Part shown: positions 4,976 to 45,400 of the stretch, piece by piece | Numbering within the stretch: position 1 is the first letter of the stretch | Layout of the letters: each line of letters begins with the position of its first letter | Origin: Gnetum montanum | Lineage: Eukaryota; Plantae; Gnetophyta | Direction: 5' to 3' | DNA: 64,000 nucleotides | NCBI GenBank assembly: GCA_015680685.1 | Contig: MNCI01001519.1 | Coordinates: forward strand, 635,318 to 699,317 | Made by a program: the position numbers and the translations under genes | Notes under the pieces: model-generated | Seen by the model: the letters and a program-made list of their open reading frames with translations, nothing else | Told to the model about the DNA's origin: nothing | Databases searched by the model: none

Positions 4976-5771
4976 TGAATGATGAATGATGAATTTGGTT
5001 GGTATCCTTGTGTAAAGCATGTAGCATTTCTAATAAATATTTAGATACCTCATTTGTTGGCAATGTCTAAATGATTCACCCTAACTGAAACATTTATTTT
5101 ATTGGTAAAAAGAAGTGTAAGATGGAAACATTTATAAGCATAATAGATGACGTATCTAAATATTGTATTCGTAATGTCTAGAATTAACTGAAAGATAGAA
5201 AGTCATATATTAATAGAAGAATTTTTAGGCTTGCCTAGAAAAACCTTGTGTTTTTAGAGGTAGTGATGATCAAAGATGGCATTAGGCTGGATAAAAGGTG
5301 CAATCATCATCAACGGACTCGTTCCACGAATAGCAAGGATGGTAAACAGCTTCCCAGGGCTGCAAAACTTCTATACGATGTTTTTCAGAAATATAAAAAA
5401 AAATTGTTCACCGCAAAGTCTAACGGTACATAGGCAAGGTCTAATTGTGACATAGACTGTTGTATACAATTCCAGCACATTCTCATGTTGTTTAGTTCTT
5501 AACTTGCTAGGTTTTGTCCTTTGTTCATCTCTCTAGTCAGGGATAAGTAGGCTTCTCATTCCAGGGGCCATATTTTATTTACCTCAAGCCATTGACTTGA
5601 AGTCTGTTTGCTAAAACATTGCAAGTGTTGTCTTGTGTCTTTTTTGAATTTTCTCCCTTTAAAAATTGTTTCAAGGAAGGAAAGAGATACATGAAATACA
5701 TTTGCACACGTCACTCTTTAAAATTAACTCATAAAAATGATATATGTATGTTCATCAAAAATAAAGAAAAC

Positions 5772-5867
5772 CTGAAACATTGACAGTGGTCCACATCTGA
5801 AAATTTTTCGCAATCGCCCATATATTGATAACTCTTCATATGTCATACCCATGTCAGCTTCATCCAA
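5772..5867 (-). CDS. QNS1: NADS coding exon 11 ([32 protein letters not shown])
   Basis: Acceptor ttttcAG; donor CAG|GTTTTC. Confidence 0.95.
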
Positions 5868-20800: not shown

Positions 20801-23800
20801 AGGTTCCAAATCCACCTGATATTTGAGTTCCAGTGCTATATTTACACCGTTTTTTTGTATAATTATTTACAATTCAAAATTTTATTTTATTTTTGAAAAA
20901 GGTCAGGTATTATATTAACATGAACAACTGTACACAGAACCGAAGAGCCCCAAACCATCCAAAATCAACCATCCACCCATACGAACAAAATTGGGTGACA
21001 GCACCCCACTAAACAACAGCCCAAAGACACAGACAATCAGCAAAACAATAGCAGAACAAGACCAACCGAACCCAGACCCAAGAGACACCAAGAGACCCCA
21101 CCACCAAAGAGATTGGTCCTTTAAAGACAAGTGGGGAGCCCCGAACACTTGCAGAACAGCCTCATCTCCTCATGGATCATGTCCAGCGTATGCTGATGAT
21201 GCTCCAAGTCCACAAAATGGGCTGCCTCCTGAAAATTCTTGAATTGCTCCACTTTCGTCCAACGTTCCTCCTCCATGCCTGTGCCATCCAGATGTGAATC
21301 CTTCCCACTGCACCTGATATGGCACCGGAGCTCATGCCAAGAGGTGGTTTGACCAATATTCATGATTACATAGGGACATTGTCCCTAGCTCAGCCAATCC
21401 TTTACTCTTTTCTTGTGCGCCTGATCCAACTGTCACTAGATCTCAGCCGCCTCATGTGCCCAGCATTCCTATTCCTCTTGTTCCTGGAGCTCTTGCTAGC
21501 ATGCCTCCTCCTAGAGTTGTGCTTGCACACTCTCCCATAGCTCCCACTCCAAGGCTTCCTTGGCTACGGCCTCCGCCAAGTCCCTTCTCCGTTGGTCCTC
21601 CAATTCCTGTTCTTTCCGCACGCGCTCGACTTCCTCCCTTTGCTGAAAAAACACAATGTCATGCTCAGCCAACACCACCTACCACTGCTCCCATTCCTCT
21701 GATTTGGCCTGCCTGTCCGTCGCCTCCAGCCCTTCATCGAAAGAGGCCTTCCAGCACACCACCTCCTCCAACTAGCTTCAAAAAACCACTTCATGCTCAT
21801 CCCATCTTCACTGCCAAAAGGCCCTTTCCTCTTGTCGTGCTCTCAACGCCGCCTCCTCAGGCTTAGGACTCAGAGTGACCAAAGACTAACCATCAAGACC
21901 ACCTCCCCCAGTAGGAACCTCCAAATCATCACCCCCAAACACCTCAGGTTTGTGGGAGGGGAGCCTGCTAGCTTGAGTAGCAACCCCCCACCCCCTCAGC
22001 CTCATGATCTTCCGACTTGCTGGAGATCTCCACAACAACCGACACCAAACACTGTGTCCGCCTTCACTCATAGACCCAGCACACCAGAACCCCCCCCCCC
22101 CCCCCCCCAAACAGAAGGAACCCCCGTAGCCGCTGCCCTCCACAACGCCAACATAAGCCTAGAGTACTAGCCCCACCATTGTCTCCGCAAAGTATTCAAG
22201 AAGAAATTTGGCAAATTAACCTACAAACAGCCCCACCAACCCCCCCTCCCCCCTCCCCCCCCCCAAACGGCAGCAAACACTGCATAAAGGTAAAATGGAG
22301 GCCCATCAACTTGGAAACGTTACCTAATTGAACAAAAAATAGTTCAACCAGCTCCGCGGCATCTTGCCACAATGTTAGCAACGTTGACCACAACACTTGC
22401 CCACTCCCAGTTCTAGGAATGGGCCCAACAAAAAAATTTGCAACATCTTGTAGTCCCCATCCACTGGCAGTCCCAATAGCACCACTATGGACTCCATGGT
22501 CAACGTGATGTGCACCCCCCTAAACAAGGTAAAATTTCCAATCCAGTTCACAAAAAAGGCTTCATCTACCAAATCCACCTTCCCTTGCAGCTAAGGGAGA
22601 AGATTTGCCCAACCAGCCCATTGCATTGACTCCTAGAGAACCGGGTTATCTTGAAATGCATCACAACTGGGTTCCATCATCAACGTCACCCCCATGGCCG
22701 CCTATGCTTCCACCCACAATCTAATCCCCTAGGCCGCAATTTGTGCCGATGAAGGCGACACGACACCTCAAAAGTGGAAAATACCGAAGTGGCCAAAAGT
22801 GCCCTCCCTGCCCATGACAGAAAATGGGCCATCCAATGCGACATTCTCTTTTGAATTTTTTGCACTAAACCACTCCACACATTCCTCTTATGCTAGTTGT
22901 ATAGGGGAAGCCCCAAGTATGCATCCTCCGACGATCCGGGAAGCACCCCCAACTGCTGGATCACCAACCCCCTCACCCTCATAGGAGTGTTCAACATGTG
23001 CACTAAAGACTTCCCTTTATTGACCTCTAGCCCCCACCTCCATAGCTAGATGCACCAATGCGTTGTTGATTGCAATGGCCTACAACACAACCACACATGA
23101 GAACATGATGGTATCATCTGCATAATGTTTGACAAGACATTTAACTCCCGCAACCTCCAATGTTGTAACCCCCTCTACCTCACAATATGCCTGCACCGTA
23201 TCCATGACTAGAATAAATAAATAGGGGAACAACGGGTACCCCTGTTGCAACCCTCTCCTCAGGGAGGAGAACCCCCATAACTACCCATTTTTTAAGTCCA
23301 GCAAGAAACCCCCAGATCATTGGATGGATAGGCATAGCTTCACAAACTCAAGATGGAACCCTTTACTTAGCATAATTTCCTCCAGCGCTTCCCATGACAC
23401 AGTATCATACGCCTTCGAAATATCCAACTTAAGGCATAAGCCCAAGTATCGTGTCAATCTAAGCGAGTGTAAGACCTCCTGCACCAAAAGAATCTAATCT
23501 TGGATGCTCCTACCTTGAATAAACCTTGCCTAATTGGTCCCCACCAACCTCTTCATCAACAAACTTAACCACAACACTAGCAACTTAGAAAAGAGATGAA
23601 GCAAGGTGTTGCAAACACCAATCGGACGAAAGTGGATAGGCTCCGAAGCCAAGGTTGACTTTGGGATTAAAATAATTTAAGCACAATTCATCTCGCGACG
23701 AATCTACCACCAATGCATCATAGCATTGAATGCATCTAAAAAGTTGTCCCCAATAAGATCCCAAAAGCTTCAAAAAAATTCCACAGGCCACCCATCAGGT

Positions 23801-26800
23801 GTTGACGCCATACTTGTTTTCATAGACCCCCAAAGCCAACTCCAATTCATACATGGAGAAAGGGGACAACAATCGACAATTATCCTTGTTCTACAGAATA
23901 GACTCAACATAGACAAATAGCGGCTGCACCAGCCACCTCCTCCAAATGTCAAACCAAAATTCCATCAATGTCTGAGCCACCTTCTCCTCCCCAACAATCT
24001 CCTATCCTTGGATAGAGAGATGAGATCTACTTCGAAGCTTTCACTACAGAGGCATCCGCAAAGAAGAACTGAGTATTCTGATCCCCATCCTTTAGCTAAT
24101 GCACCCTAGACCACTATCACCAATAGGCCTCCACCTCACAGTCCATCACCTGCAGCTGGGAAAGAACCTCCCACTCATCCTCCAAATCTTAGCCCTCATC
24201 TTGCCCCTTCTGTATCTCCAAAAGTCTTTGCATGAGACACCCTCTCTCACTTATAAAAGAATACTTATCCTCAAATTTGATCTACTTCAATGCTTATTTC
24301 AATCAAGACAGTCCTTCCTTCAGAAATTCCCTAGGATCCTATGACCTCATGTATGTCCCCTAGATTTCGAACACCAACAACCTCATCTATGGCTTGTGGA
24401 TCCAATACCATTCAAACTTAAAAGGCTTGGGTTTCCCGGATAGGCCGTCATCCATGCAGCAAACAATAGCTCGATGGTCTGAGGCCACCCTTTCCAAGGC
24501 CATCACCATGATCCCTTTTGTCATGAACAAGTGAGAACTGACCCAAACACAGTCAATCTTGGTCATCACCTGGTCCCTTCTTTTCCGATGGTTACTCCAC
24601 TTAAAGTGGCACCCCAGATCTCCAAATCAATCAGCTCATTCTACTCCATGAACTCCATACATTCCTATGCACTTAGAGGGTCTTGGGCCACTCCATTAGA
24701 TTTCTCCCAAGGATCAACCAACATCGCCGGACTCGCACAAGTGCTGCAATCCGTTGCAACTCCCGCAAATGCTCTTCCCAAATTTGGGCCCTGTAGAAAT
24801 TTGTAACCCATATACCAAAAACTAGAAGAAACACCGTAATGCTCCACCTAGAGCAATCCAACACCTCCAAATGCTCCTACAACAATAGGGCCAAACTGCC
24901 CACCTTGCCATAACAAGGGATGACCTGAACATACCATCCCGACCACCAAAGCCAATGAGACTCCTGCTATTGCAGTTTGGTTTCTTGCAAACAAACAACA
25001 TCACACATCTCCCACCACACAATGTCCTTCAAGGTATTATGTTTATAGGAGGTACCCTGCCCCCTACAATTCCATGAAAGGAACCTCATGTTCGGCATCC
25101 GGTGTGTTTGTAGACCTCCTTGAGGGTTGACTGAACCCCCAAATCCACGTCCATCTAAGTTTGCCGAGTCCGGACAAGAGAAGCCAATGGCCTCCCCACT
25201 TTACAAGTATCTAGTGAAACCATAAAGGGTCCCTCATGCCCCACACCTCCTCTCACAATCTCCCCCATAGATGGCATGGGACCTCCCCTGACAACTAAAA
25301 CCCAGTTGGCTAGGGGGGAGCTTCACATCCAAACTGTGAACCTCCTCCCTAGAACCCTTGATGGGCAACCCCAAAGAACGTAAGGACCCAAGAAACCGCT
25401 TTGACTTCTTAGACCTCGATGAGGTTGATGACCCCAAATCATCCCCACCACTAACAAGTTCCACAGGTGGGTCCTCTTGCCCAGCAAGAGACATCTAGTC
25501 TCCTTTACTGACATCCTTGTTAGACTGCTTATTCGGCCCAACACCGCCCACAACCACCACTGGCTTCAACTGCCTAGGCACCAAGACCCCCACCATCTTG
25601 TCCTAACATCGCACAGCCCACCCTTTCCGAGTTACCAAGGTCCAATCTACACCTCCATTTTTCTGGTCCTGTGCCTTACGACCTATCTTACAGACCACAA
25701 CCAGATGACTAGCCTTACCAAAGGTGGCACAAGAGCGCCCGAGGGTCAACTGTCACATTCTCATAGTCTATTTTCACCTTTTCCTCACCATCAAGGAAGT
25801 CAAGGACAACCTCCTGAATCAAGTCCTCTAGCAAAAGTGACCGCCACACACAAAAATTGGCAAACCCCATCCTCTCAGGAATCCTGTGGCACAGTCAAAA
25901 CAAATGAAATCTCCAAGACAACTAGCAAGGGTGTGGAGAAACTCCTCCATCCAGATTTCCCATGGGAGGGATACCAAACACCCAAACCCAAACAAGGGCC
26001 CTAGAAAATAGACTGGGATCCCTATGGGCCCCCGACCTCTAGTAAGTCAACACCAAACCCTGCACCCCAAAGAACCATGGTCCCCCCATCAAAATCCTCT
26101 CCCGGTCCTGCAAGGACCTAAATACAAACAAGAAGAGCCCACCCTCGAGATAGCGAACCTCAACAAGGCAGAAATTCCAATGAATCGCCACCCATTTCTT
26201 TACCTGGTTAAAAGGTAGCGACGCACCCGCAGAGACAAACTTGCCAATTAAGCTCATCTCCACCACCCACAAACCCTCCTTAGAGGAGGCCTTCATCTTA
26301 AACTGCAAGGAGCCTTTGGCCTGCACACACTCCTCCATACCCCCAGCCCCAAGGCACCAAATTGAGCCCTCCTGCCCCTATCGTCCACCAATTCCCTCAC
26401 CCACCGTGCCCCTAGACCTGCCAAATGTGGCCCCATCCGTAGTTGGACTGCCCATCACATCCAAGCCGCCCGTCCTACCCATCGCACTCCTTGCAATCGC
26501 CACGCTTCCCCCCATTCAAAAATTCCCCCAATTCAAAATATTATTCCAACAAAGATCATTAATTCTTTCCATATGGCCATCAAATTTGAGTTTGTACATT
26601 TCTTCAAAATTTTATTCATAAAAAGAAGCAAATTTGTTAACAAAATTTAAAAACAAAAGAAAACCCCAACCTAAAATACTTGGTGAGAAAGCGGTTAACT
26701 CATTCCTATAGGAGTTGACTCATAATAAATAATGATAGGTGGTCTAACTGAGAAAATTGGGAGGCAGAGGTAGCGAGCACTACAGGGATGGTGGTATCAA

Positions 26801-29800
26801 AACTAGTGAGGGTGTTAAGGTAGCAAAGACCAGTGGGAGTGGTGGTTGTGGTAGCTCAAGGGGCAAGTTTGGAGGTGCAGAGGATGTTGTGGATGGTTTT
26901 GAGTGCAATGTGGGGCAGGGAGAGTGTGGGCGTGGAAGGGTATAGCTCTAGCCTTTTCGACAGTGACAAAACTTTGCTAGGCTCAGACGTCTGATGCCCT
27001 GGGATGGGGGAGTATCAACGTAGTGTCATGCTCTTAGAGGACACTTCATTTGCAGTTGCAAGGCCCAAAGCAAGAGGGCATGCAAACAATGAGGCTTAAC
27101 CTCACAGGAAGTTTGTTTCAGCCAACACCCAACCATGGTTGGATCTCATTAAGCATTTTGTTGCCACGTCTTGGGAGATGCCAAAAGTGGAGATTCGCTC
27201 CCTAGCAAGGGACTTGTTGTTCATCTTCCAAAATTTGGAGGATAGGGACCGTATCCTACTAGGAGGCCCATGGTTCTTTGAAGCCAAGAGCCTTGCCCTC
27301 ACCCACTAGAGCTCAAGAGCCCATTGAGATCCTAGGTTATTCACATAGGCTCCTATGTGGGTAAGGGTCTTGGGAATCCTTTGGGAGTTATGGAGCACAA
27401 ATTTCTTGAGGGTGCTTGCAAGCTTTCTTGGCAAGTTCACTGCGTCAAAGATGCACATGGGGTATGCAAGGTTTTGTATCTAGAGATCTCTTTCCTTTGC
27501 AAACCTCTTGTGGGAGGTTCATCTTGCCCTCCCCTTTGGGGAGGAAATGCTGGTCGTTGAATATGAGAATGTTCCTGCAAATGTGCCTGCACCTCCCTAG
27601 GCTAGGCCACCTACAACATGTGAAATCTATGGTAAATGAAACCATGCCACCAAGGACTACAAAGTGTGCCCTAGGATGCCCAAACCAAAAGATAAGGCAT
27701 CTCGGGGTGGGTGGGTATTGGTGGGAAAGAAGAGGAGGGTTTCAACAATCCTTCCCCCTTCTCCTCCCCACTTCCCTCCTTCTCTAAAGAGGAGGAAGGG
27801 TGTTGGTGGCAAGGGACCTATCATTGGAGGACCCATTGCCAATCCAATCTAAAAGATCAAGGAATTTCAACAACTTAAATCACGTAGATTTGCAATGATT
27901 GTAATACACTATTCATGGTGAAGCTTAAATCTATTGTCCTTAGAGCACATGTATTGCCAAGAAATTGGAAGCAAAATCAAAATCCTAGAGCTGGTTAATT
28001 CAAAGTGTTAAAGGTTTGGGGACATACCCTAGTGATGAGTGGCGAGGTACCCCTACACTCAACCATACGAATACGAGTGTTTCACGCACGATTCGGTCAA
28101 ACTCCGCAAACAAGCTAGTTGTGGTATCTAAATAGTTGCTTGTTGATCGCAGTCCGTTGTCTTCCCACCTGGACTAGTATACGCTTTGTCACGTATGGTT
28201 TAGTCTAGAGTGAGGTGTATGATGTGGTTTCTAACCTAGTGCTACTCCTAGAGGCAATGGAAAATAACTTTAATTAAGCTAGGAGGAAAAGGGTGAAGAG
28301 AGTCTAAGCTAATAGGAAGTGGGAGAGAGAATCTAAGATAGCCTAAGTGTGATGAGCATCCGTTCCCTAATCATCTGTACACATCTTGGACCTCGTGCAC
28401 GACTACCACTGGGATCACCAAGCGCATGGCCTAGGTACACTACTGGGATACCAAGTAGTCACACTTGAATGCTCGTGATTAAGTCATACTCATTCCACGT
28501 TTAAGGAGTTTAGGGTGAAGAGATATTAACTACGACAACAATAAATAATAATAACAATTAAATAATTAAACTAAGTGAATGCTACAATGATGAAGTAATC
28601 TCGATCTTTATTTTCGGTCATGTGCATGTCCAAGTACTTCACACTCGAATAAAGGTTCCATACAATTACAATCATCACACTACAAGCATGCACTAGGGGA
28701 AAGGGTTGAGAGGAAAAACTGACAAAAAGATCCTAACACTAACTTCTTGACTCTAAAAACTAACTATTACTTTCCCATGTGCCCCATTGTGTATTTATAG
28801 GCTCACACGGGAACCGCAATATCACATATCCGATATCGCTTGTCAGGCCACGATATTGCGTACCCGATATCACGTAAGCGATATCAGGGGTCTGATATCG
28901 GAACTCATCAGATATCAGGGGTCTGATATCAGCACCTAGTTAACAAGGGTCCGATATCAACACCTGGTTAACAAGGGTCCAATATCAGCACTTGACAAAC
29001 CACGATTCATCACCTAGGAACCTTGGAGTATCTTGGGGAACACATCACTATTGCATACCCACATGAGGATGCTTCCCCATGTAACACTAAGGATTTTTTA
29101 AATTAGCTTAGACAATACTAAGGTCTTCTCTTTGTGTGTGTGTGTGTGTTTGATGCATTGCAAATCTAATTCTAAAGTAGTATCAAGAAAAAGAATGATT
29201 TTTAGAACTTCTCAAAAAGTTGACTATGAGATTTCAATTTGCTACATACTATAAGAGGACCTTTTATTCCAAAGACAATATTAACTTGAGATGCAAGAAT
29301 TTAGTTTAAAAAAACAGTCTGTTTTCAGCAGAATTCACTTTTGTAGTAGCAAATCTAGAAATAGTTCGTTATAAGGTTTCAAACAGTGATCTAGAAATAT
29401 TACAACTTTGCCTCTATTAAACATACATCTAAAGCACAAGAAATAAATATTATTAAGTTCTAATTTCACTTTGTATGTGTTGAACATGTAAATAATGATG
29501 TTATAGGAAGTAGATTTTGTGAAGTCCATCTTTGCTTAAAATTACATTTACTGTAATGGATAGGCAAATTCAGTGTACATTAAACAGAGATTCATTAAAA
29601 CGAGCTGCATTAGATCTCTCTTGGTTAAGTGTAACACTCTGTCATGTTTGTTCTCACATGTTTCATGCAAGATCATAATTGTTTTCTAAGGGTGTTTTGA
29701 TAGGCCCTGATACATTTGGTGGAGAATGTCCATGTGTTATAACAGTTGCGGTTGTGCTCTCTATGTCATGTTCTTGCCTTTGGTTAGTTTAGATATGGAT

Positions 29801-32800
29801 ATTTGTTTTTCTTCCTAATCAAAAATTTAGTGGGGCATGTCAGTGAAGAAAAATGTCATATGATGATGTACAGAGGATGTTGCAGATCAACTCATTGTCC
29901 AATGATTCATCTGGATGGAGACAGTGGTGTCTTCACGAAGCATGTGTTTTGTTCATTGAATAAGCAATATTTGTCTTCAATTGAAAGATTTTTATATATT
30001 TGAAGCCAAATCTTAAAAGAGCTCTTATATTATTAAAATTTTAAAGACGTAAAGATATTGTTAGCTAATTACACATGAAAATAACTAATAAGGATGAATC
30101 CTTGTAGACATTTCAACGGGGACCGGGATTCTCCTAGAAGTAATACCCCTAAATCATTTTATCAAGATTCTTCTAGAAAAAGAAAACCTTCTAGATGTAT
30201 TTAGATGCTTTACTGGGTAATATGTAATTAGAGTTTGAATATATTGGCCCATATAAGGGCTGGATTCCTTGCTCATTGAAAGTGAACACTTCTATTGCTT
30301 GATTAAACAATAAGAACTTAACTTATCCTTGATATTTCCCTCCATGCTTGAAGGTTCTACCATATAAATATTGTCCCTCTCATGTTTTCTGTTTTTGCAT
30401 CAAATGCTACTTTTGGTGTAACATTCATATATTGCTCTTTTAGGTTATCTTGCTGAATGATCACTTGAACATGCCACTTTGTCTATCACTGCACTTTCTG
30501 CATCTTTCTAACACCTGACTCATAATAAATGATGACAAGACTCTGCAAAAACATTAAACATCTGCAGAAAAATATTTCTTGGGAATGCCCATCCTCACAA
30601 AAATGAACTATTTTTTCTAATGAAAATTAGACATTCTATTTAATTTCAAATAGAGTTTGACTTACTTTTGCATCTGTAAAGTACACAAATTTAGGCAATG
30701 CAAAAACTAGCAGCAATCAATTATGTTGTTGCCAACTGAAATGTTGGTTTCTTTATAGTGGACTTCTGCAGAAAATTATTTCTTGGGAATGTCCATCCTC
30801 ACAAAAAAATATCAAACAGCTCCAGAAAAATATTTCTTGGGAATTCCCATCCTCACAAAAAATGAACTAATTTTTGTAATGAAAATTAGACCTTCTAGTT
30901 AATTTCAAATACAGTTTTGACTTACTTTGGAATCTGTAAAGTACAGACAGGTAGGCAATACAAAAACTAGCAGCAATCAAGTATGTTGTTGCCAAATGAA
31001 ATTTGGTTTGTTTATAGTAGACTCATGCAGTATTACAAGGTTAATAAGATAACAAAAAGGTCAATCAATAGCTCTCACCTCAATATAAGATGTACAGTTT
31101 GCAAAGTAAAGGAATACTGATCACCTCAATATGAAATATATAGTTTGCAAAGTAAAGGAATATTAAAAGGGTGGTGATTGATTTCCAAGATTTTCAAATT
31201 TAGTGGCTAGTAATGTTAGATGGTAATTTACACTTTGTGAATGTCAGTTAATCAAGCCATAAAGGTACAGTATTTGTAAGTTGAGTATGTCTTCGGTGTC
31301 AATTTACAATTGGTTAACTTACAAAATCATGTAAATCGAAAAGTCATGAATCGCAACTCTCAAAAAGTATTGTAAGTCTTTTGTTGAAAATGGGTTCTAT
31401 ATATTGTCAGAGTGAAACAAAATCAAGTCCTACACAGGAAGAAGGCAAAATAGACCAAAAGTCCAAAAGAAGGAAAAGAATTTACAAAACTCTTACTGTG
31501 AGAACAGAAAAGCCTGTTACTGCCATTTTAATTTAATTTTCTAATTCTATTACTGTTGCCTTCTTACAATCCTGAAAAACAAGAAACATTAACAAAAAAA
31601 TTAATTGTTCTGCAACCAGTGGGAAGAAGAACAGACTTACAGCATCCAAGTCCACTACTGCTGTCATAACCTCAACATCTTCAAGGGAAAATTGTGATCC
31701 TTGACCAACTAGGTCACCATTTATGATAATAGAAGCACAACCATCTGCAACCAAGTGCATTGAAAAAGATGTCATTCATACATATAATGTAAGATCATTC
31801 CGTCCAACTTAAATTTATTTTTTGTGATTATAGTCATTTACAAATATTTGTAGGTAATTATGGTGTCTCATAATTTGGATGCTTCTCTCTCATTCAGACA
31901 ATCAATGAGGCTTTCAGTAAAACAGTACCACAACTGCTCAATTATTTTTTACATAACATTGTTATTTTTAGCAATGGTGCATATTTTTTGCAATAAACTA
32001 AAAACATTTTTTTTCTCAGTAATTAAGTACTTGAAAAAACAGCCAGATTGCCATAGAATTTAGATCAGAAAGAATCAACAAGCCAGAAAAGTTGCAGGCA
32101 AAAAGTTAAATAAAAAATTTTGGTAATATAAAGGAAATCATCAACATCATGGTGCCTTTATTGTGATCAGAATAAATCAAGTCAACTTAGGTTGGTCAGC
32201 ATAATTTTTGATGTGCAACTAATCATAAGTACTGCACACTTCTAATTGTAGAAGAGATCATAACATCCATCTTGAATCGTTCAGTCATTAACATTGTATA
32301 CAAAAATAAAGTTTGTTAAACAATGTGGAAACCAAAGAATCATGCAACTTCCATAACAAAAACGGGGTGAATTAAGGTTTTTTTTTCACCCCCATTGTTT
32401 GGAATTTCAATTAATAATCTAGAAAGTTAGGTCTGATAAGTGCCTAACTAATATGCTGAAAAACACGTTAAGAACTAGTTCATCTTTTCATTTTTTTCTT
32501 ATGATGTGACATTTATTCTAAATTCTTATAAAAGGATGCAAGAAATGCTATATACATTTTAAAAAATTTGCAAACATTAAAGTATGAACGTGAATGTTGA
32601 AAGGAAACAATTCAGATCAATAGTAGAGGAATATGCAATGCAGCAATCAGTCCTAAGTGTAGGAAAGTGGCAGAGTTCTTATGGGCAAGTGGCAGAGGAA
32701 TACCCTCGATATCCTCCATGAGCTGGAGCGCCCAAACTGCGCCTGTAGGCAGCTCCCGACTCACCCGTAGGGGGTTATCCCTGGTGGGGGGGTCGCTCCC

Positions 32801-35800
32801 CCCCCCCACGGCCGTTGTGTTGTTGGGGGGTCGCCCCCCCTGGGTGTTTTGGCTTCCTTCGGTTTTCTCGGTTCTGGCTGGCTGTTTGTCTGCCTCTTCT
32901 GAGTTGTTTGGGGCCCGGGGGCCCTCCCTGTGGGGTTTCTCCTGATGGCCCGCCGCTTGTTATCGCTTGTAATCTTTGTAACATAATTTTGCTCCTTTAA
33001 TATAATCCCGAACTCTTTCTCAAAAAAAAAAAAAAAAGGGTTGCATCAACAGGCAACTGCATAGACAATTGGACAGTGATTTCCATGTGGATGCAAATAT
33101 TGATTAGCATAGTACAAATGAGATTTCATCTTCTTAGAGTTGAAACTAAAAGATGAGAGAATGAACAACAAAAAGATCAAGGATGTAGATTTTGTCAACT
33201 ACAGGAAATACAAGATAAACACCATATTTTAATGGAATGTTGTGGAACTAGCTTTTATAAATAGAAATGAAATATTGCAAGAAAAATTTTGCATGAACTA
33301 CTATATATTGAAGAATTACTCAAACTATATGATTATTGGACACATTTGATACACTTTAAAAATATTAATATTAATATGTTAGAAAGTCAGAATAAAGCTG
33401 GATCAACTTACCAAAATTAGTTGATTCTTTTTTTCTTTTCTTTTTTGAGGAAATGTTCAGGATTAAATTACTGAAAATAAAATACAAGATATTACAAAAT
33501 GTGGGTCAACAACATTGGCCCAGATGGGAGGTTTTTAAGCCTCAATCCATTGTGCACAATTGTGCACCAGCCACTCACATCAAAAGCGTGAGACTGTAAA
33601 AGATGTTTTGGCAGTGCAAAACGACACTGCGTCACTTCTTGAAAGATCGCACAAAACCTAGGGCCCACGGCCGCCCTAGGGGGGCAGAAAAATGGTCCCA
33701 CTACAGGCTCGTCAGCAGCCTATGACAGGCGTAGTGTGGATGTTCGAGGGCATGGAGAATGTCCAACGTGTTGTGATGAAGCTTTGTGTCCACAAAGCTG
33801 ACAGCCTGTTGGAATCCTTGCATGGCCGATTCACGCCAGTTTCGATCCTCTGTCGATGTCCCCCCATCCGAGTGGAAACGCACCGAGGTCCGATAGATGT
33901 GATGCCAGAGCTCCCCCCACATGCAATCACAGTTGATGCCAAGGCTGATGTATGGACATCGTCCAACCCTAAACCACTAGTGCACACTCTGCTCATGTGC
34001 CCAATCTTGCTGGCGCTGTCTCTATTCCTCCTCCTCTTGCTCTCACCTCTGCTGAGCTTGCTCAACTGCCTCACGCTCTCTTCGGGTGGTTTCCTCCTGG
34101 ATCAGCTCATCTAGCACTTGGGCCCAAATCTTGTCCACCAAACAGGCCCAGGCTGCATCCGCCAACAGGGCTTGCTACCTTATTATCTCCTATTCCCTTT
34201 TGCAGAAACAGGTTTCCATTTTGATCCGTGCTTGTGTGAGGGCTTCTTCCCACTTTGCTTCCCACTCTCGGCATTTAGCTTCGCGTGTCGTGGCCACGGC
34301 CTCCAAAGCCGCTTGCTGTAGCGCATCATCCCTTCTTTCGTTGTGCCTCGACATTTCAAGCGGTGACATCTCCAGCACCGCCATGGGGTTTGGGGTCCTT
34401 TGTCCCCTACGGCTACGTCTTCTCCTAGTATACGTCACCGTGGGTTGGGTCCAACTCTCCAGGCCGGCCAAAAGGGATGGGTCAGACGGGGAGCCCCCCA
34501 AAGGGGGGGCAATCCCTAGCCCCGAAGGATGTTGCCCCCTGGCTGCCCCCTGCCACAAGGCCAGGATGAACCCGTAGTGGCAGCCTCGCCTCTGCTGTTG
34601 TAGAGCCACCAAAAAAAACCTTGGCAAGTTAACCCTAACTCCCAATTTAAGGCATTTGAGGAAAGCAAAGTGGATGCCTTGGAGTTTTGACCTGTTGCCA
34701 GACTGTACAAAAAATCAATCCACAAGATCTGCCGCTCGGGCCCAGATCCGGGGCAAAGAGGATCTCGGCACTTGCCTGCTTTGTGTGTGTGGCACCGGCC
34801 CATTGAAGAAAATTTTGGTGTCTTGTAGCCCGCGTGTGGAGGGCAGAAAGATTTTGCAATCGGCCTAGTCCCCCAGACACCTAGCAATTGAGGACTCAAT
34901 GATGATGACCTTTGTGCCCCTAAAGTAGGTTTGATCCTCGTGCCAGTTGGTGAAAAAAGCATCGTCTGGGAGGGCTGGGCCATTGACTTGCCATTGTAGG
35001 GCATCACTCCAACCGCATTGCTCCACTAGCTACCACAACTCTTCATCTGCTTGGAACGCCGCATAGTCAGGCTCATACATTGGCGTGACACCCATTGCTC
35101 CTTCAATCTCTTTCCACGCAGCTTCTACCTAGGAAACCACCTGGGGGGTGCAGTCTATGTAGTTGGACGATTTTGCAATTTCTCATCTTCCACACTACCC
35201 ATAAAAGTAGCATGGCTCGAGAATTGCCTGTGAAGTTCATCGAGGGGGCCGCACCCGTCGTACGCCACATGGAGTGCATTGGTAAATGAAGTGCTGCACG
35301 ATCTTAGGCACGACGCCACACAAAGGACAGGTGTCATCCAAAACAAGGCCTCATCTGCATAAGAGCACCCGAACAAGCAGCGCGTCGTTCTTAATTAACC
35401 ACAAGGACACTTTAATTTTCTCGAGCAACCGTCCCTACCAAATCTGCCGCCAACTAGGTACCAACAGGTACATGGCCGTCAGCAGGCGACGCAGCTCAAG
35501 AATCAACCACCCTTGCACTTGCATTTTGCGTGTATGGCCGCAAAGCGTTTGCCAGGGCTTCGAGCCTTGTGCTCCCACCTCCCACTGTCTGTATTTTGCA
35601 TTCATTACATGGACCCACTTGGCCAGCTCCCCAAATTGGCTTGTGAAACAGAGTAACAGGCGTTGCTGGCCCATCATCAGCTTAGCCTCAAACTTGGAAA
35701 TGCCCAACCCCCCGCATTACAGGGACGTGCAACCCGGTCCTAGTTCACAACGTGAATTTTGCTCCCCCCCCCCCCTCCCCTCTACCCCCCAACCAAACAA

Positions 35801-36385
35801 ATCGACGAATGCGCATGTTGAGTTTGTCAATAATGGCGCTCGAAGGGGTGGCAACCGTGGCCACAAATCGGGTTATTGCCGTGAGTATCCCCGACACCAC
35901 CACCAACCGCCCCTTCCTGGTTAGGAAGCGATTGGCCCAGTGTTCCACTAGTCTTTCAACCTTTTCCAACAACGTTCCCCAAGACATACACTGCCCCCAC
36001 TAGAAAAGTGAGATACCTAGGTAGGTATCTCAAACTATTCCAAGCGAAATGTTCAGGACTTGTACCACTCGGCTCTTTATCTCTGTGTCCACGTTGACAA
36101 AATGAGTCGTTGACTTAGCCATGTTAATCTCCAACCCCAGCTCGTCTGCTAACCATGAAAGTGCCACATTGATGCACCGTGCTTGTGGGACCCCAGCACG
36201 ACTAAGCAACATTGTGTCATCTATGTAATGTTCAGCCAGACATTCCACCGCCGCAATTTCTAGACCGCCAACCCTCGCCGCCCTGCAGTAATGTTGCATC
36301 AAATCCATAGCAATAATGAAAAGTAGGGGTGATAGGGGGTCTCCCTATTGCAACCCCCTCCCAGGTGAGGAGAGACACCACAACT

Positions 36386-36424
<39 letters not shown>

Positions 36425-39400
36425 ACNATGATTGCATGTAGATGCAAAGTTGGATAAAGCCCAGGTCGAAACCTTTTCGTTGCATGATGGTGGTCAGGGC
36501 TTCCCAGCTGAGTGTATCATATGCCTTGGTGATGTCTAGCTTGAGACATAGCCCTGGGAAATTCGATATTCAGAGAGAATGAAACAACTCCTGCATGAGA
36601 AGCACTTGGTCCTGCAGGGTCCGGCCTTGCACGAAACCTGTTTGGTTTACTCCCACAAGTTTAGGCATTAGCGGAGCTAGCCTACAAACAATCATCTTGG
36701 AGAATAACCGAAGTAAAACGTTGCAAACCCCGATAGGTCGAAAATGTTTTGGGTGGTGCACCTCTGCTTGCTTGGGGATGCACACAATTCGAGAACAATT
36801 AAGCTCCCTTCGAACCTACCTCTTGGCCAACATAAGGTTGAAAGTGTCCAGAATGTTGGGCCCCACTATATCCAGGAATGTCCTAAAAAATTCGAGGCTC
36901 CAACCATCCAGCTAGGCATCTTTCCTCCCAGCATATCGTTGATTGTTGTTATGAGTTCCTGCCAGGAGAACGGAAACAGAAATCTAGTGTTATCCTCCTC
37001 GTTTAGCACCTACGCAATTTGGACTGATATGGACTTCGTGGGTCATTTGGCCCAGATCTTCTCCCAATATTGTGTCAGCTCCCTAGCAACGCTCTGTGGC
37101 TCATCAACTATCCCCCCCTCCATGGTGTGCAAACTATGTGGTTGGCTCCATCCTCGTGTCTTGGCAACAACAAAGAAGAAGTTGGTTTGCCTATCCCCCT
37201 CTTGGAGCCATCTAGTCTATGATCTTTGTTTCCAATATGTCTCCTCCAAGTCAAGGCCAAGAAGTTGCCGTAGGATGTTCTGCTCTTCTTCATGCAGGTC
37301 CTCCCCTACCTCCTACCTGGTCTGGATCTGAGTCAACCTATCCCGAAGCGCTGTGCAACTCGTCCGGAAAGAAAATTTGTCCTCCACTGATAGGGCCCGA
37401 ATAGCCCACTTTAGGCGAAGCAAGCCATCTTTGAGGAAATTCCTGGGGTCTCCCTGGCCCTATCAGTAGTCTACCCAAATGTCCTCAACTAACGGCCTCA
37501 ACCATGGCTTGTACAACCAAGTTGCCTCAAAACGAAACAATCGCAAAGTTCGGCACCTTTTGGGCAAGCAAACAAACCAGGGAGCGATGATCTGATGCCA
37601 CCCATTCCTATCCCGTAACCCATGCAACCAACCAAAGGAGGAGGTCGGAACTGATGTAGATCCCGTCAATTCTAGAAAGGACGCAATCAGGGCCTTTTTG
37701 CCTATTGCTCCAAGTGAACTGGCAATTCTCAATGGGCAGATCCACCAGCGAGTGCACCGCCAGGAAATTTTGAAACTCCTAGGTGCCAGGAGGGGGGGCC
37801 TCAGCACCTGACTTTTCCCATGGGTGTAATCTTTGGTTGAAATCCCCCACAATTAGCCATGCTAGGTGGTCTCGTACTAGCGTCGCCACGCACTCCATCT
37901 CCTGCAACCTTTATTCCCACATCTATGCCCCATAGAAGTTAGTTAGCCATATCCCCCAGGAGGGGATATGGACTGCCATGGTCCACTGTGAGGAGTCAAC
38001 CAGCATCATGTCATAGCGGGCTAGGATAGCCAAACCCCCCGCCCGACCCACACATGGGTGTAGATGAACTTTTCAGCCACCCCAGATGAGATGGTGTCAT
38101 TCTGTTGCCTGTAGCTTGGTCTCTTGAAGGCATACAATATTGCATTCTTCATCATGAACAATTCTTCTCAGGGTATTTCTTTTATAGGGTGCACCCTGTC
38201 CCCTACAGTTCCAACTAAAGACCTTCATGTATGCCCAGACCAACGGTGTTGGTAGACCTCCCGAAGGGTCTTTTGCAATCCCAAATCAATATTTCATTGT
38301 GCTTGTTTAGCTCTAGAGAGACTCTCGCATGGGCGTTCGAGGCAACTCCCCCCCTCTCGCACAACTAGGCTACATCCTGAGTCCTCAGATGATGGCACCT
38401 TCTCCAGGAGCTTACGGGACGTGGCAGTCCCCCTAACCACATTAACCCATTTGCCCAGGAGGGAGCACTATCCCTGGCATCGTTGGATCGGCTAATGATG
38501 GTGAGGCATGGGGGGTGTTGGTTTCAGAGTTGTGGGGAGGAAGGTGAAAGACGAAGTGGAGAAAGTCGTGGGAGGGGGGGTGGGGGGGTNGATCCTGCAC
38601 CCTCGTCGACTCGTCCATCCAAAATCGACAATTAGCTTCTCGATGGCCGAGTTTCCCACAGCACTCGCAGCCGCCACTCCTACGCTCTCGGGCCTTCGAC
38701 CCCTGTTCCTTGCCTAGCTCTGCCTCCAAGTTGTCAAACTCAACCTGAAGGTGTTCCTCCCCACCTGGAAGCTCCAACACCATTTCCCTGATAAGGTCCT
38801 TGGCCGACAGATTCTACCACACGCAAAAACGGGCAAACCCCATCCACGCCATTGTTTGCATGACCCTATCGAAAGCGATAAACTCCCCAAATTACCCCAC
38901 CACCTGTTCAAGGAACCCCAAGTTCCACATCTCCCAAGGAATCCCAGACACCCTTACCCACACCGAGGCATGAGCAAACAGGTCTGTCTCGCAGTGCGTC
39001 CTTGGCTGCCAAGGGGTCAACGCCAACCCCTGAGCATCATAGAACCACGATCCCCCCAGCAACATTGTGTCCCTATCCTGCTGGGGAAAATGAACAAGAG
39101 CAACTCCTCGGATAAAGTTCAGACCTCAACCTGTCCAACCTTCCAATTTTCTTTCACCCACCTACGGATTAACTCCATCCGAGGGCGGGCTCCCGAAGAT
39201 ATGAAACGGCCAATAAGGCTCCGTTGCATAGTCCGGACCCCCTCCGTTGGTGGTCCGCTGATATGGAGGCGCATGGTATCATCAATATGGGAGTGTGCCT
39301 CAATCTTCCCATTTGGTGCTCTAAATTCGTTTCCCCCCCAGGGTCCTACTTGGCCCTGACCGGGTCTGGGCCATTCCCGCTTCTCGCATGTTCTCCTCCG

Positions 39401-42400
39401 CTCCTGCACCCCTCAGTGAGCCCCTCGTTTGTGTCTCCTGCTTCTGCCACTCCATCGTCATCCGTTTTACCTGTGCTCATCCCACCATTCACCTGTTTCT
39501 CCACTCCCTCCCTCGCTTGTGTCTCCACTCCCTCACTCCGTGGTGTCATCCATGTCCTTAACTTCTTCTTCTGCTTTGCAGTATTGTTATATCAATTAAT
39601 TGATTCTTAGAATCAATTTCTATCATCAATATCTATCAATTATTTTCCAGATTTCTTGTTCCTTATTTAGCAGATTTCCTATTGTAATTCTTTTCTATAA
39701 ATTGTTATAATTGTTGATTCAAGATGAATGAGAGTAAGAGAATTATTTTTCCCATCTTTTCTTCTCTCCTTCCTGTTCATGGTATTAGAGCCAGTTCTTT
39801 CACTGACATGAGAACCTAGTCAACAAACCAAAATGGCAAGCACGGCACCTGAATTTTCACAATGGAATCCTCCTTGATTCCGACTATCTCAACTCCACCC
39901 TTATCCCCTTCCTCCTCTCAAATTGAAAATCATTCTCTTCAAATCACCATACACCGACTAAATAGAAATAATTTCTATGAATGGTATCAATCAATCTTGC
40001 TCATGATCAAAGGGAGGGGCAAAATGGGTTACCTGACAAGAGCAACTGCCATGCCTAAAGAAAGTTCTGCCATGTAAAGTAAATGGGAGATGGAAAACTC
40101 AACAGTGATGGCTTGGTTGATCAATTCAATGGAGCCCAAAATCGGAAAGTTGTATCTATTTTATCAAACAACCAAGGAGATCTAGGATACCACAAAAGAG
40201 ATGTATTCAGACCTTGAAAACATCTCACAAAGCTTTGAAGTCCAATCCACCATCTGCAATACTTGGCAAGGTAACTCATCAGTCACTGAATATTTCAATA
40301 CTCTCTCGGAACTATGGCAAGAAATTGATGTATTCCACAATGTGAATTGGAAATATCTTGATGATGCAATCATGTATAACAAAATGATGGAAAGAGAGTG
40401 GATTTTTGATTTTTTGCAGGGCCTTAACAAAGATCTTGATGAAGTTCGGGAACGAGTACTTGGTACTAAACCACTTCCCTCCTTGAAGGAAGTTTTTGCA
40501 AAAGTGAGGAGGAAAGAAAGTAGAAAGAAAGTGATGATGCACTCTCAAAATCCACCCACTAAAGCCATGTCCCATGGTTCGGCTCTAGTTGCAAACCGTG
40601 AAGGAGGCAATACTAGCCTTGTCTCTTCCTTATTGTCCTACAAGGGTTCCTTAAATGGTTGGATCGTAGGTATGAGAGCCTTTGACCACATGACTAGTTC
40701 ATGAGAAGCATTTTGTACGTATGAAGACTATGTGGATAAAATTAGAATCACAGTGATTGATGGTTCGTCGAGCTCAGCTATAGGCCGTGGAGATGTAAAA
40801 CTACCTGGGTTCATTTTAAAATCCATGCTTTATGTTCCGAATTTAAAATGCAATTTGCTCTTAGTTAGCAAGCTAACCAAAGACTTGAATTGTGTTGTGA
40901 CCTTTTTTCCTTCTCATTGTGAGTTTCAAGATCTGTCATCAGGGAGGATGATTGGCAATGCTAAGGAGCGACAAGGCCTCTATTATCTCGTTGGTGCTGG
41001 TTCTCCATCAAAGTTTGAATTCCCTACAACCTCAGTTATCTCTTCTAAGTCTATTCCTGAGTATGAGGTAATGCTTTGGCACAAAAGACTAGGACACCCA
41101 AATTTTTCATATTTGAAACATGTGTGTCCCCGTATGTTTACTAATAAAGATCCTTCATCTTTCAAGTGTGATAATTGTATTCGTGCAAAACAAATTCGAA
41201 CATCTCACCCTCATCCTTATAAACCTTCTATTCCATTTCATCTTGTTCACAGTGATGTGTGGGATCCTTCATGAGTACCAAATTTAATTGGGGGACATTG
41301 GTTTGTAACTTTCATAGACAATCACACTCGTGTATGTTGGGTGTACCTAATGAGAGATAAATCCGAAGTTAGCTCACTTTTCAAAGAATTCCATAAGCTC
41401 ATTACAAATGTTTTTCAACTGTCAATTCATATTCTTTGTTCAAATAATGGTAAAGAATATTTTTCTCAAGAGCTTAAAGCATATTTAAGAGAGCATGGAA
41501 TCTTTCACCAAAGTTCTTGTGCCTATACACCCCAACAAAATGGGGTTGCAGAACAAAAAAACAAACATCTTTTGGAGGTAGCTCAATCAATTATGTTTAC
41601 TAGCTATGTTCCTCAATCCTTCTGGGAGACGTTGTTCTCACCTCTACATATCTCATTAATTGAGTCCCATCTAAAACTCTTCAATACCAAACTCCACTAA
41701 GTCTTCTCTTATCAGCCTTTCCTTCTACACAAATTCTCAACACTCTTCCACCTTGTGTCTTTGCATGTGTCATATATGTACATAATGCTCAATCAAATCA
41801 TGGGAAACTTGATCCAAAAGCCCTCAAGTGTGTATTCTTAGGGTATTCTCCTACACAGAAAGGGTATAAATGCTACTACCCTCCTTTAAAATGTGTTTTT
41901 GTATAATGTGATGTCACATTTCTCAAACTCCAACTCTTTTATCCCAATGTTACTCTTCAAGGGGAGAATCAACCTATAGAAGAGCAACACTAGGATTCAA
42001 TCATATCCCTACCAATTGCTATGCCCAAGTTCTCATCAGAAAATCATGTCACACCTCATGTCGAATCAGTCCAAGAGTCATTCAAATCTAGGGGGAGAAT
42101 CACACCCAAACCAATTCTGAGATACTCTAGACAGCCACAAGATCCTCAACAAAACCAAGAGCCCAAACTAGAGATAGACCCAAGTGATGGAGATATACAG
42201 GAGTAGCTTGAGGTGGTGAATGATAATGAAAAGATTGATGACTTGGATCTTCTGATTGCAGTTCGAAAAGGGGTGAGGTCATGTGTAAAATATCCCATTT
42301 CTAATTATCTGACATACTCCAAGTTATCATGTAATTACAGGGCCTTTCTTTCAAAGGTTGATGAAACACAAGTTCCAAGGGATATCTTTGAGGCTTTGGA

Positions 42401-45400
42401 AAATTCCAAATGGAAGGAAGCTATGATGGAGGAAATGAAGGCTTTGGAAGATAATGAAACATGGGAAATAGTCCACCTACCTGAAGGGAAGAAACTTGAG
42501 GGGAGCAAATGGGTGTTTATTGTCAAGTATGGTCCTGATGGCAGCATTGAAAAATACAAGGCCAAACTTGTGGCACAAGGGTTCACCCAGACATATGGGA
42601 TACACTATGCAGAAACATTTTCTCTTGTGGTGAAACTCAATTCTATTAGGGTTTTTGTTGTTTTTAGTTGCAAATCTAGATTGGGGGCTACATCAACTCG
42701 ACATAAAAAATGCCTTCTTACATGGTACATTGGAAGAAGAAGTTTACATGAGGATACCACTTGGTTTTGAATCTCAAGAAGGTATGGGTAAAGTATGTAG
42801 ATTAAAAAAGTCACTCTACAGACTCAAACAATCTCCCCGAGCCTAGTTTACCTGATTTAGTGATGTGATGAAGCAACTTGAATATGAGCAAGGATAAGCC
42901 AATCATACTTTATTTGTTAAAAAAGGAAGCACGGTAAAAGATTAATCCTTATTGTTTATGTCGATGATATAGTGATTATAGGAGATGATGATCATGAGAT
43001 TGAAGATCTCAAAAGGAAGCTCCAAGTAGAGTTCAAAGTCAAAGATCTTGGTCCATTGAAGTATTTTTTGGGAATGGAAATTGCTAGAAGCAAGAAAGGG
43101 ATTTTCATCTCTCAAAGGAAATATATCATAAATTTACTCAAAGAGACTGACAAGATGGGGTGTAGACCAACAAGGACTTCATTGGAACGAAACTGGAAAC
43201 AAAAGACTCCTAAAGAAGATCCTCCTGTAAATCGAGAAAGCTATCAACGTTTGGTTGGTAAACTCATCTATTTGTCTCTCACTAGGCTAGATATTGCTTT
43301 CAGCGTAAGTATTGTTAGCTAGTTCATGCATGCTCCTACAAAGAGGCACCAAGATGCTGTAAATCAGATTCTAAGGTATCTAAAGGGATGCCCAAGGAAG
43401 GTACTATTGTTCAAAAAGTGCAGTGAAAGGGACATTGTTGGTTTTGTTGATGCAAATTGGGCCAGAGCTATTGAAGATAGCAAGTCTACTACGGGGTATT
43501 GTACTAAGGTCTAGGGAAACTTAGTAATGTGGAGAAGCAAAAAACAATCTGTTGTAGCACGTAGTAGTGCAAAAGCTGAATATAGAGTTATAGCACAAGG
43601 AATATGTGAACGCATTTGGCTACAAAGGTTGATGGAAGATCTCAAGATACCTCAAAGTGATCTGATGAACTTGTTTAGCGATAGTAAGTTTGCCATCGGT
43701 ATCATCCAAAATCCAATATAGCATGATCATATGAAGCATGTAAAAATTGATAGGAATTTCATAAAAAATGAAGTTGACAATGGAACAATTACTCTATCCT
43801 ACATTTCTACCAAGATGTAAGAAGCTAATATTCTTACGAAGGCCTTATGTAGATCAAGCTTTGATTCTTTTGTTAGCAAGCTAGAAATGATAGATATCTA
43901 TTCACCAGCTTGAGGGGGAGTGTTAGAAAGTCAGAATAAAACTAGATCAACTTATCAAAATTAGTTAATTCTCTAAATCAATTAGGGCCTAATTTTGTGG
44001 ATCAACTTACCAAAATTAGTTGATTTTCAAAATCAATTTTTGTCATCAATATCTGTCAATTATTTTCCAGATTTCTTGTTCCTTATTTAGCAAATTTCCT
44101 ATTATAATTCTTTTCTATAAATTGGTGTAATTGTTGATTCAAGATGAATGAGAGTGAGAGAAATATTTTTCCAATTTTTCCTTCTCTCCTTCCTGTTCAT
44201 AATATATTTTTTATGAATTGATTAATTTAATAGATCCTTTTGGCTTGAAATAGAGGCATAAAATCTCAATTCCAATTTCCAGCGTTTGAAGTTATCCTTT
44301 AGAATAGTTTGACTTCATGACAATAATATGTATTTCAACTATAGAACTTAATGTGGCGTTTATTTTTAAATCTAACTGCAATATATAGTTAAGTCAAAAA
44401 GTAACTAAGAAGAATATTTTGGGGTTTCAATCAAATACAGTGGAGTCGGCAGGAAAACCATGAGGTTTGTGGTTACTAGATACAGAAGAATGGCAATAGA
44501 TAATAGCATTAAAGAACGTAATAGCATTGTTGTGAAAATTTTGAAAAGAAAGCATATCATTCTTTTTAATTTAAATCTGTGTTTAATCATCTTTACCATC
44601 AAAAAAGGAATTGATATGCAATATAAATCTTGCTAGTTCACAGGTCCACTCTTAATTGGAGGGGTTCTTAATAAATACTAAAACTGTTTCCAAGGTAAGC
44701 AGAACTACCATACCAAAATTGTGGAATACCTAGGTATTTAACAAATGATTATGGTAGCATAATGTAGTGCCCCCACGTTTTACATTAACCTTAACATTTT
44801 GCATAATGTGCATTGTGCACAATATTAAGATGTGGTTTATAATTATAAGTTTGATGTAAATGTTAAAAAATAAAATAAACTAAACTTGGCCATATCATCA
44901 CAATACTTTTTAGTAACCATTTTTCCTAATTATTCTTATTATTTAATTTTCTTCCACAATAGTTGACTTATTAAATAAAGAATTATCAAGCCTATTAATG
45001 TTTTGAATTCTAAAAATACTAATACTCAACATAAATAGCAAATGTTAGAATGTAAACCGTTTCATAAGTTTTTCACAAGTATTGTATAAAAACTTGCTCC
45101 AATTAAAGGCTGCCTCAATCAAGAAAATAAACTGAAGAAACAAGAAATAAGGACTATTCATCTTTATTTAGTATCACAGTATACTAATTTAAATGACAAA
45201 ACACTTTACGTCTGGTATTAAGATAGTTAACTCTGGAGTTGATCATACATTTTCAAATAGGTTCCTACAATATAAGCCAAAGTGCATGATAAAGTTCATT
45301 TATAAAGATAAAAACAAAGGAATAAAAATATTACCATAATAAAGACGGCCGCCATCACAGCCTTGCTGGTTACTATAAATATATACTCCACCACATTTAA

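Follow-up and report, generated by a model that had tools for sequence, protein, structure and literature searches.

Decayed L1 retrotransposons of Gnetum montanum carry a conserved ORF2 extension that probably ends in a J-domain

The introns of a glutamine-dependent NAD synthetase gene of Gnetum montanum host four decayed long interspersed nuclear elements (LINEs) of the L1 type, designated here copies A to D. They lie in a window of 64,000 nt (assembly GCA_015680685.1, contig MNCI01001519.1, positions 635,318-699,317 of the forward strand), which is the whole stretch of DNA that was analysed and to which coordinates refer unless another contig is named. The copies are probably dead members of an L1-clade lineage in which the protein encoded by the second open reading frame (ORF2p) continues past the zf-RVT domain into a tail of four parts. 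The tail would begin with a constrained domain of about 180-250 amino acids (aa) that is almost unrepresented in protein databases, pass through a Gly/Pro-rich linker with a basic patch and a highly charged, probably helical spacer, and end in a C-terminal J-domain followed by a short Cys/His tail.

Results

Four LINE copies share a coding extension

All four copies have the same orientation, at the following places:

Copy A: about 9300-11400 and beyond, minus strand
Copy B: about 20900-28500, minus strand
Copy C: about 33400-39590, minus strand
Copy D: about 46000-52000, minus strand

Searches were run on stop-free pieces of these decayed copies. By their domain content (DUF4283 in ORF1, Exo_endo_phos and RVT_1), copies A-D are L1-type plant LINEs. 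In copy C, Pfam recognises DUF4283 with an E value of 1.6e-12, a CCHC knuckle being visible in the translation, and RVT_1 with E values of 4.7e-8 and 6.1e-9. Exo_endo_phos gave a weak match in copy B (E = 0.0051, under the cut-off), and the homologous region was found in C and D by tblastn. The zf-RVT motif CPLCG...H...C can be read in the translation of copy C, which ends in an A-rich tail at about 33425-33446.

An extension of about 450 codons, located 3' of zf-RVT, is common to the four copies, and two smaller fragments of the same kind were found with a profile of its terminal module (A3, hmmsearch):

Copy A extension: 9506-10886, minus strand; junction with ORF2 open at 10668-10967; middle codon of the HxD triplet is TGA
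Copy B extension: 21124-22715, minus strand; terminal module free of stops over 87 aa (21124-21384) and containing HLD
Copy C extension: 33701-35116, minus strand; like those of A, B and D, this span is approximate
Copy D extension: 46299-47566 (MGVT to end), minus strand; junction with ORF2 open, frameshifts further on
Fragment E: about 3990-4730, plus strand; 5'-truncated, with the charged region and the terminal module (GKCPFVELG...), the HPD part deleted, as also seen in the translation
Fragment F: 32663-32767, plus strand; last ~25 codons of the terminal module (E = 2e-6)

A first-pass annotation, made from the letters of the window, had proposed that the four minus-strand extensions are homologous, and this is borne out by tblastn within the window, where stop-free pieces of one copy match the others with E values of 1e-6 to 1e-19 and 32-59% aa identity. 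The conserved blocks that it quoted (MGVT, GW..LL, AFFxNW..FxGxxIxLT, GxHFxF, NLPxFFL, HSGLIL and TYTRRRR) are found in the translations, together with the E/R/W-rich region and the CxC end. No nucleotide similarity between the 3' regions of A-D was detected when the window was compared with itself by blastn. Chance similarity of the extensions was ruled out by E values reaching 1e-19. Fragment F, inverted and separated from the 3' end of copy C by about 1 kb, is nearest to the subfamily of that copy; it may be an extremely 5'-truncated insertion.

In copy C the extension occupies a single frame running from 35131 down to 33701 and interrupted by nine internal stops (seven TAG and two TGA). 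From the end of ORF2 onwards, its parts are as follows:

35276-35329, minus strand: zf-RVT motif CPLCG...H...C, sharing its frame with the extension
35166-35210, minus strand: W..W..RN..IV motif at the C-terminus of ORF2, in another frame because of two compensating shifts
35084-35116, minus strand: conserved junction of ORF2 and extension; its homologues in A (10668-10967) and D (47525-47746) are open
34553-35095, minus strand: N+core domain of ~180 aa (GW, AFFTNW..FRG..I..), with three in-frame stops
34385-34552, minus strand: Gly/Pro-rich linker, read from the translation, with a basic patch (TYTRRRR) at 34403-34435
33980-34384, minus strand: charged region rich in E/A/R/Q, 37% D/E/K/R by composition
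33740-33964, minus strand: J-domain-like module (HSD...FQQAVSFVD...TLD), with the HxD codons at 33866-33874
33701-33739, minus strand: short Cys/His tail and terminal TAG, kept in B, A, D and fragment F
33425-33700, minus strand: 3' untranslated region (UTR) and A-rich tail (about 33425-33446)

The basic patch of the linker may be a signal for nuclear localisation; the charged region, given its composition, is presumably helical or a coiled coil.

Two modules of the extension are under coding constraint

Synonymous sites between the copies are saturated. In codon alignments derived from tblastn, the extension shows non-synonymous differences (pN) of 0.32-0.42 and synonymous differences (pS) of 0.60-0.84, much like ORF1 plus ORF2 of the same copy pairs (pN 0.30-0.38, pS 0.69-0.79). 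Because protein-guided alignments are biased, the extensions were also aligned using nucleotides only, and differences were counted per codon position in the frame of copy C. An excess of third-position differences was found in all three comparisons of this global alignment (p from 2e-5 to 2e-4 per pair). When the alignment was split by region, the differences at the three codon positions were 0.33/0.33/0.55 in the N+core domain (p = 3e-16) and 0.38/0.33/0.51 in the terminal module (p = 1.6e-4); the linker and the charged region gave no significant codon-position signal. Since the signal appears only in N+core and the terminal module, the extension seems to consist of two modules under constraint, with sequence between them that is either subject to loose constraint or difficult to align. 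The first-pass annotation had described one accessory domain kept by selection. Its coding nature and the selection hold up; the single domain gives way to a composite of two constrained modules.

LINEs transduce their 3' flanks, and the 3' region might accordingly be regarded as a neutral passenger, a fragment of a host J-protein gene picked up by 3' transduction and spread through one master element. The silence of the linker and the charged region in the codon-position test would suit such an origin. We nevertheless consider it highly improbable: in spite of synonymous saturation, the copies are still 35-55% identical as proteins and differ in excess at third positions in two modules, the frame is continuous with that of ORF2, and the same order of parts recurs in a very distant AT-rich L1 (see below).

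The extension is in frame with ORF2

Stop-free pieces of 74 aa in copy D (47525-47746) and of 100 aa in copy A (10668-10967) span the ORF2 region with W..W..RN through MGVT. The junction of D had been predicted to be open and that of A to be continuous apart from one TGA, and both predictions agree with our data, the stop just upstream of the open piece in A being TGA. Two further details of that annotation have to be revised. Copy C, to which a single frameshift had been attributed, instead contains two compensating shifts, and its zf-RVT motif CPLCG and the extension share a frame. In copy B the motif upstream of the extension had been taken as deleted; a remnant of the junction, GWKHRRPWG, survives at 22689-22715.

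The frames of zf-RVT and the extension agree in copy C, so a fused ORF2 is likely. Judging from the reading frames, the extension is likely to form one product with ORF2, of roughly 1,450 aa or more, although no intact copy was seen here and the single ORF is deduced from the frames. Alternatively, the tail could be a separate ORF3 that starts at the Met of MGVT, translated either by reinitiation or off an RNA that is subgenomic or spliced, in agreement with the presence of this Met in A, C and D. Such an arrangement appears unlikely, as A and D have no stop between W..W..RN and MGVT, the residues preceding the Met (W.E...A) are conserved as well, and the frame is common to zf-RVT and the extension in A, C and D and in the distant L1 described in the next section.

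The N+core domain and a distant relative of the same architecture

Profiles were built for the core (A2), the terminal module (A3) and the N part (A4). No significant match to N+core was obtained when ten extension pieces were compared with Pfam and the A2 and A4 profiles with the PDB. Among 1.84 billion representative proteins, the A2 profile found three matches with E values of about 1e-4. Two of them, P0001 and P0003, are real relatives of the core (hhalign, 96-97%) and are unnamed singletons in the clusters. The third match was a leucine-rich repeat false positive and was rejected. Searches with the core piece of copy C, A3 and A4 among proteins of 0.55-1.75 times the query length gave no homologues, which says little, and the ESM Atlas returned nothing, or wnt noise under the recognition threshold (for the N part of D and the terminal piece of B).

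The P0003 protein was located on two near-identical metagenome contigs with 34% GC, L001 (1-13513) and L002 (1-13874). At 99.99% identity they amount to the same AT-rich eukaryotic contig, present in two metagenome data sets, and beyond 8001 their flanks are free of ORFs longer than 80 aa. The L1 on L001 is of plant type and almost full length, and has an ORF1 with a zinc knuckle and Pfam matches to Exo_endo_phos (E = 7.2e-5), RVT_1 (5.6e-9) and zf-RVT (1.9e-10). A single frame with four stops (4447-5580 of L001) leads from zf-RVT over W..W..RN into the N part and the core, and this core is homologous to that of the window (hhalign 97.4%, E = 9e-12). After one frameshift, another single frame (5529-7502) comprises 1.5 kb of charged sequence (38% D/E/K/R) and ends in a terminal module, directly followed by the 3' UTR and an A-run. 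Pfam DnaJ recognises the second half of this module (profile positions 36-63 of 63, E = 1.6e-4), and 10 of its 11 PDB matches are J-domains, with DNAJC5 as the best (0.0017) and Ydj1, DnaJ and DNAJB6/8 among the others. On the strength of the Pfam and PDB matches, the terminal module of L001 is identified as a J-domain. The order of ORF2, N+core, charged region and J-domain, as read from the contig, is therefore present in a very different genome.

Under clear constraint, common to very distant L1s and with no relative in Pfam or the PDB, N+core is a candidate for a new domain family. It may also be a strongly diverged member of the PMD/Transposase_32 group that came from a long terminal repeat (LTR) retrotransposon or a host gene, an origin which is compatible with a J-domain at the end of the tail. 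We regard this kinship as possible and rather doubtful. It was suggested by one faint Pfam match to PMD in copy B (E = 0.083, 20 residues over ITLEDV..LGLP..G) and by the pattern F..N..(V/F)RG..(I/V).(L/F)(T/S)...I...LG(L)P, followed later by NLP....L...(Y/H)G(L/M)(I/L)L, which resembles PMD/Transposase_32. However, an E value of 0.08 is expected by chance with ten queries, Pfam finds nothing of the kind in C, D, A, L001, P0001 or P0003, word-based and PDB searches were blank, and the AlphaFold2 model of the N part was unusable, its predicted local distance difference test score (pLDDT) being 47.6. The kinship is at present an unconfirmed lead, which no profile test supports.

The first-pass annotation also held that the extension replaces RNase H. 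Nothing indicates an RNase H-bearing ancestor, and Pfam gave no RNase H or RVT_3 match in any extension piece or in the pieces of L001 and P0001/P0003, so that a replacement cannot be claimed.

The terminal module of the window as a probable J-domain

The terminal modules of the window and of L001 have a common start, RC[PW]Y..LG[IV]. The distance from the aromatic residue of helix I to the His of the H-x-D triplet is 26 residues in copies B and C, as it is in DnaJ, DNAJC8 and L001, and an Ala of helix III stands at +23 from this His in copies B and C and in L001. Copies B and C thus show the J-domain spacing of helix I (Y/F..LG), HPD loop and helix III. The A3 profile had four weak matches in the PDB, the second of which was the J-domain of DNAJC8 (E = 0.22) in register: PY.I..I is aligned with PFEVLQI, and H-x-D with HPD.

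The triplets themselves read H*D, HLD, HSD and HLD in copies A-D, three of the four middle codons being one C-to-T step from a Pro codon. Reads and contigs of related copies were mapped on copy C at a likeness of at least 85%. At position 33871, the first base of the TCG codon of C, the base that yields CCG, a Pro codon, is present in every one of the six DNA contigs (depth 42.4 of 42.4) and in six RNA reads out of nine. At 33945, an Ile codon (ATC) is found in 52 contigs, giving CPYIILGI.

Several observations weigh against this reading. Pfam DnaJ matches no window copy even at E <= 10, and Pro occurs at the middle of H-x-D in none of them, the codons in A-D being TGA, CTG, TCG and CTT. The window module and the J-domain of L001 are not significantly similar by hhalign or in a BLOSUM62 shuffle test, and phmmer searches of the PDB with single terminal pieces gave no match. 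The AlphaFold2 model of the terminal module was poor (pLDDT 63), all helical (H15-28, H37-81) and not compact, and its matches in Foldseek PDB and VIA wide searches were generic helical hairpins only. The J-domain of L001 is itself diverged: its DnaJ score of 22.1 bits covers half a domain and is under the gathering cut-off of 27.8, YLD stands at the place of HPD, and the first half starts with RCWYDVLGV.

The absent Pfam match and HPD proline, the lack of significant similarity to L001 and the uninformative fold model, together with the conserved His/Cys-rich tail, would also be expected of an unrelated small helical or metal-binding His/Cys module in which the J-like pattern is coincidental. 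This explanation is improbable in our view. Related reads restore both HPD and the Y.ILG start, the DNAJC8 J-domain is second of only four weak PDB matches and lies in the correct register, the spacings are the same as in canonical J-domains and L001, and the same position in the homologous architecture of L001 is taken by a J-domain backed by Pfam and the PDB. Sequence features taken together, the terminal module of the window is probably a J-domain. What the first-pass annotation called a terminal CxC domain is more plausibly a decayed J-domain with a short Cys/His tail behind it.

Relatives of the copies among DNA contigs and RNA reads

Members of the family abound in DNA contigs. Between copy C and related DNA contigs (33400-39399), we counted 247 A>G, 185 C>T, 180 T>C and 120 G>A differences, and 10-26 of each transversion; the dominance of transitions in both directions fits methylation-driven deamination of all copies.

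Reads from oligo-dT RNA-seq of the same species cover the whole of copy C, including the extension. Only 3 of 2,179 and 3 of 1,486 of these reads are at least 99% identical to C. As most are less than 90% identical, the reads stem from other members of the family. RNA thus contains family members, which does not imply autonomous transcription: the libraries behave as unstranded, and read-through or intronic transcripts would yield such reads too. The low identity of the reads and the nature of the libraries limit the support that expression lends to a functional tail.

Genomic setting

The NAD synthetase gene exceeds 47 kb in length, its minus-strand exons lying at about 59003-59395, 45300-45698 and 12459-13000. 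Its introns contain large L1 insertions in sense orientation, at least three in number (B, C and D). Intronic insertions in this orientation are usually selected against.

A Ty1/copia element (39594-44200, plus strand; gag-integrase-RT ORFs at 40201-42770) adjoins the 5' end of copy C or is inserted there. Its terminal direct repeats of 187 bp (39594-39780 and 44014-44200) are 91% identical. Two bases given as N and a long homopolymer of G/C occur in the reverse transcriptase (RT) region of copy C, at about 36370-36430 and at about 38560; reads look cut at 36374-36426, and the place may be a weak spot of the assembly. Local tandem duplications are present at 30547-30771/30805-31030 (88.5% identical) and 57250-57401/57328-57479 (94% identical).

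Discussion

From these results, a mechanism may be proposed for the tail. The HPD loop of the J-domain would recruit host Hsp70 and trigger its ATPase on or beside the large ORF2 protein or the ribonucleoprotein (RNP), and Hsp70 brought there could help in folding, in RNP assembly or remodelling, or in nuclear import, with a putative effect on retrotransposition. Nuclear localisation could be signalled by the basic patch; the charged helix may serve as a spacer or in oligomerisation. The first-pass annotation had considered anti-silencing or targeting as functions of the extension; with the terminal module read as a J-domain, the evidence points to Hsp70 recruitment instead.

It is, in our judgement, an even question whether a plant L1 lineage, old and widespread and present both in this genome and in the distant AT-rich plant-type genome of L001, supplies an Hsp70 co-chaperone of its own, with a functional J-domain tethered to the ORF2 RT by way of a conserved domain not described before and a long charged helix. 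Such a protein would be the first retrotransposon-encoded J-protein. Human L1 RNPs associate with chaperones of the Hsp70 family. If the proposal is true, chaperone recruitment would be an element-encoded step of LINE RNP assembly or of target-primed reverse transcription, and a LINE-borne J-domain would imply that it pays the element to supply Hsp70 recruitment in cis, both for its protein of ~1,450 aa or more and for the RNP. To our knowledge, domain gains in LINE ORF2 are rare, the described cases being RNase H in plants and helicases in insects; such gains show which host function limits retrotransposition. A practical consequence is that the tails, which are abundant in this genome, might be taken for host DnaJ-like genes in annotation.

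Comparison with known systems

The first-pass annotation knew of no plant L1 with this architecture, and we likewise found none described in the open-access literature, nor any report there of a LINE-encoded J-domain.

Plant L1 elements with an RNase H domain added to ORF2p have been described (Smyshlyaev et al. 2013, as cited in PMC5203782). As far as the citing text goes, the likeness is close, since both are plant L1s with an extra module downstream of RT/zf-RVT in the ORF2 frame; the elements of the window differ in having a domain, a charged spacer and a putative J-domain, with no RNase H signal. A foreign functional domain gained at the C-terminus of ORF2p and kept across lineages is also known from the insect R1/TRAS LINEs, whose ORF2 has a C-terminal viral-type superfamily 1 (SF1) helicase domain (PMC4686597, PMC5563155). 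Those elements belong to another LINE clade and another host kingdom, and the activity is that of a helicase, as opposed to a putative Hsp70 co-chaperone module. Orchid Ty3/gypsy elements that acquired an N6-methyladenosine (m6A) demethylase domain (PMC9289625) represent a similarly rare fixation of an extra host-like domain in a plant retrotransposon. They are LTR elements with a different domain, whereas the elements of the window are LINEs.

For N+core, the closest candidates are PMD (PF10536) and Transposase_32 (PF20167), accessory domains of plant LTR retrotransposons and Mutator-like elements (MULEs). Like these, N+core is borne by plant transposable elements, is of similar size and has loosely similar motifs; unlike them, it has no significant profile match, so that membership is not established.

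The terminal module resembles J-domain proteins (PF00226) in being a short helical module with the J-domain spacing and, in relatives of the family, an HPD loop. It differs in being C-terminal, fused to an RT and highly diverged, falling below the Pfam threshold in the decayed copies of the window. The large T antigen of polyomaviruses carries an N-terminal J-domain. By analogy, the L1 lineage described here likely resembles it in that a J-domain encoded by a parasite recruits host Hsp70 to the parasite's own replication protein.

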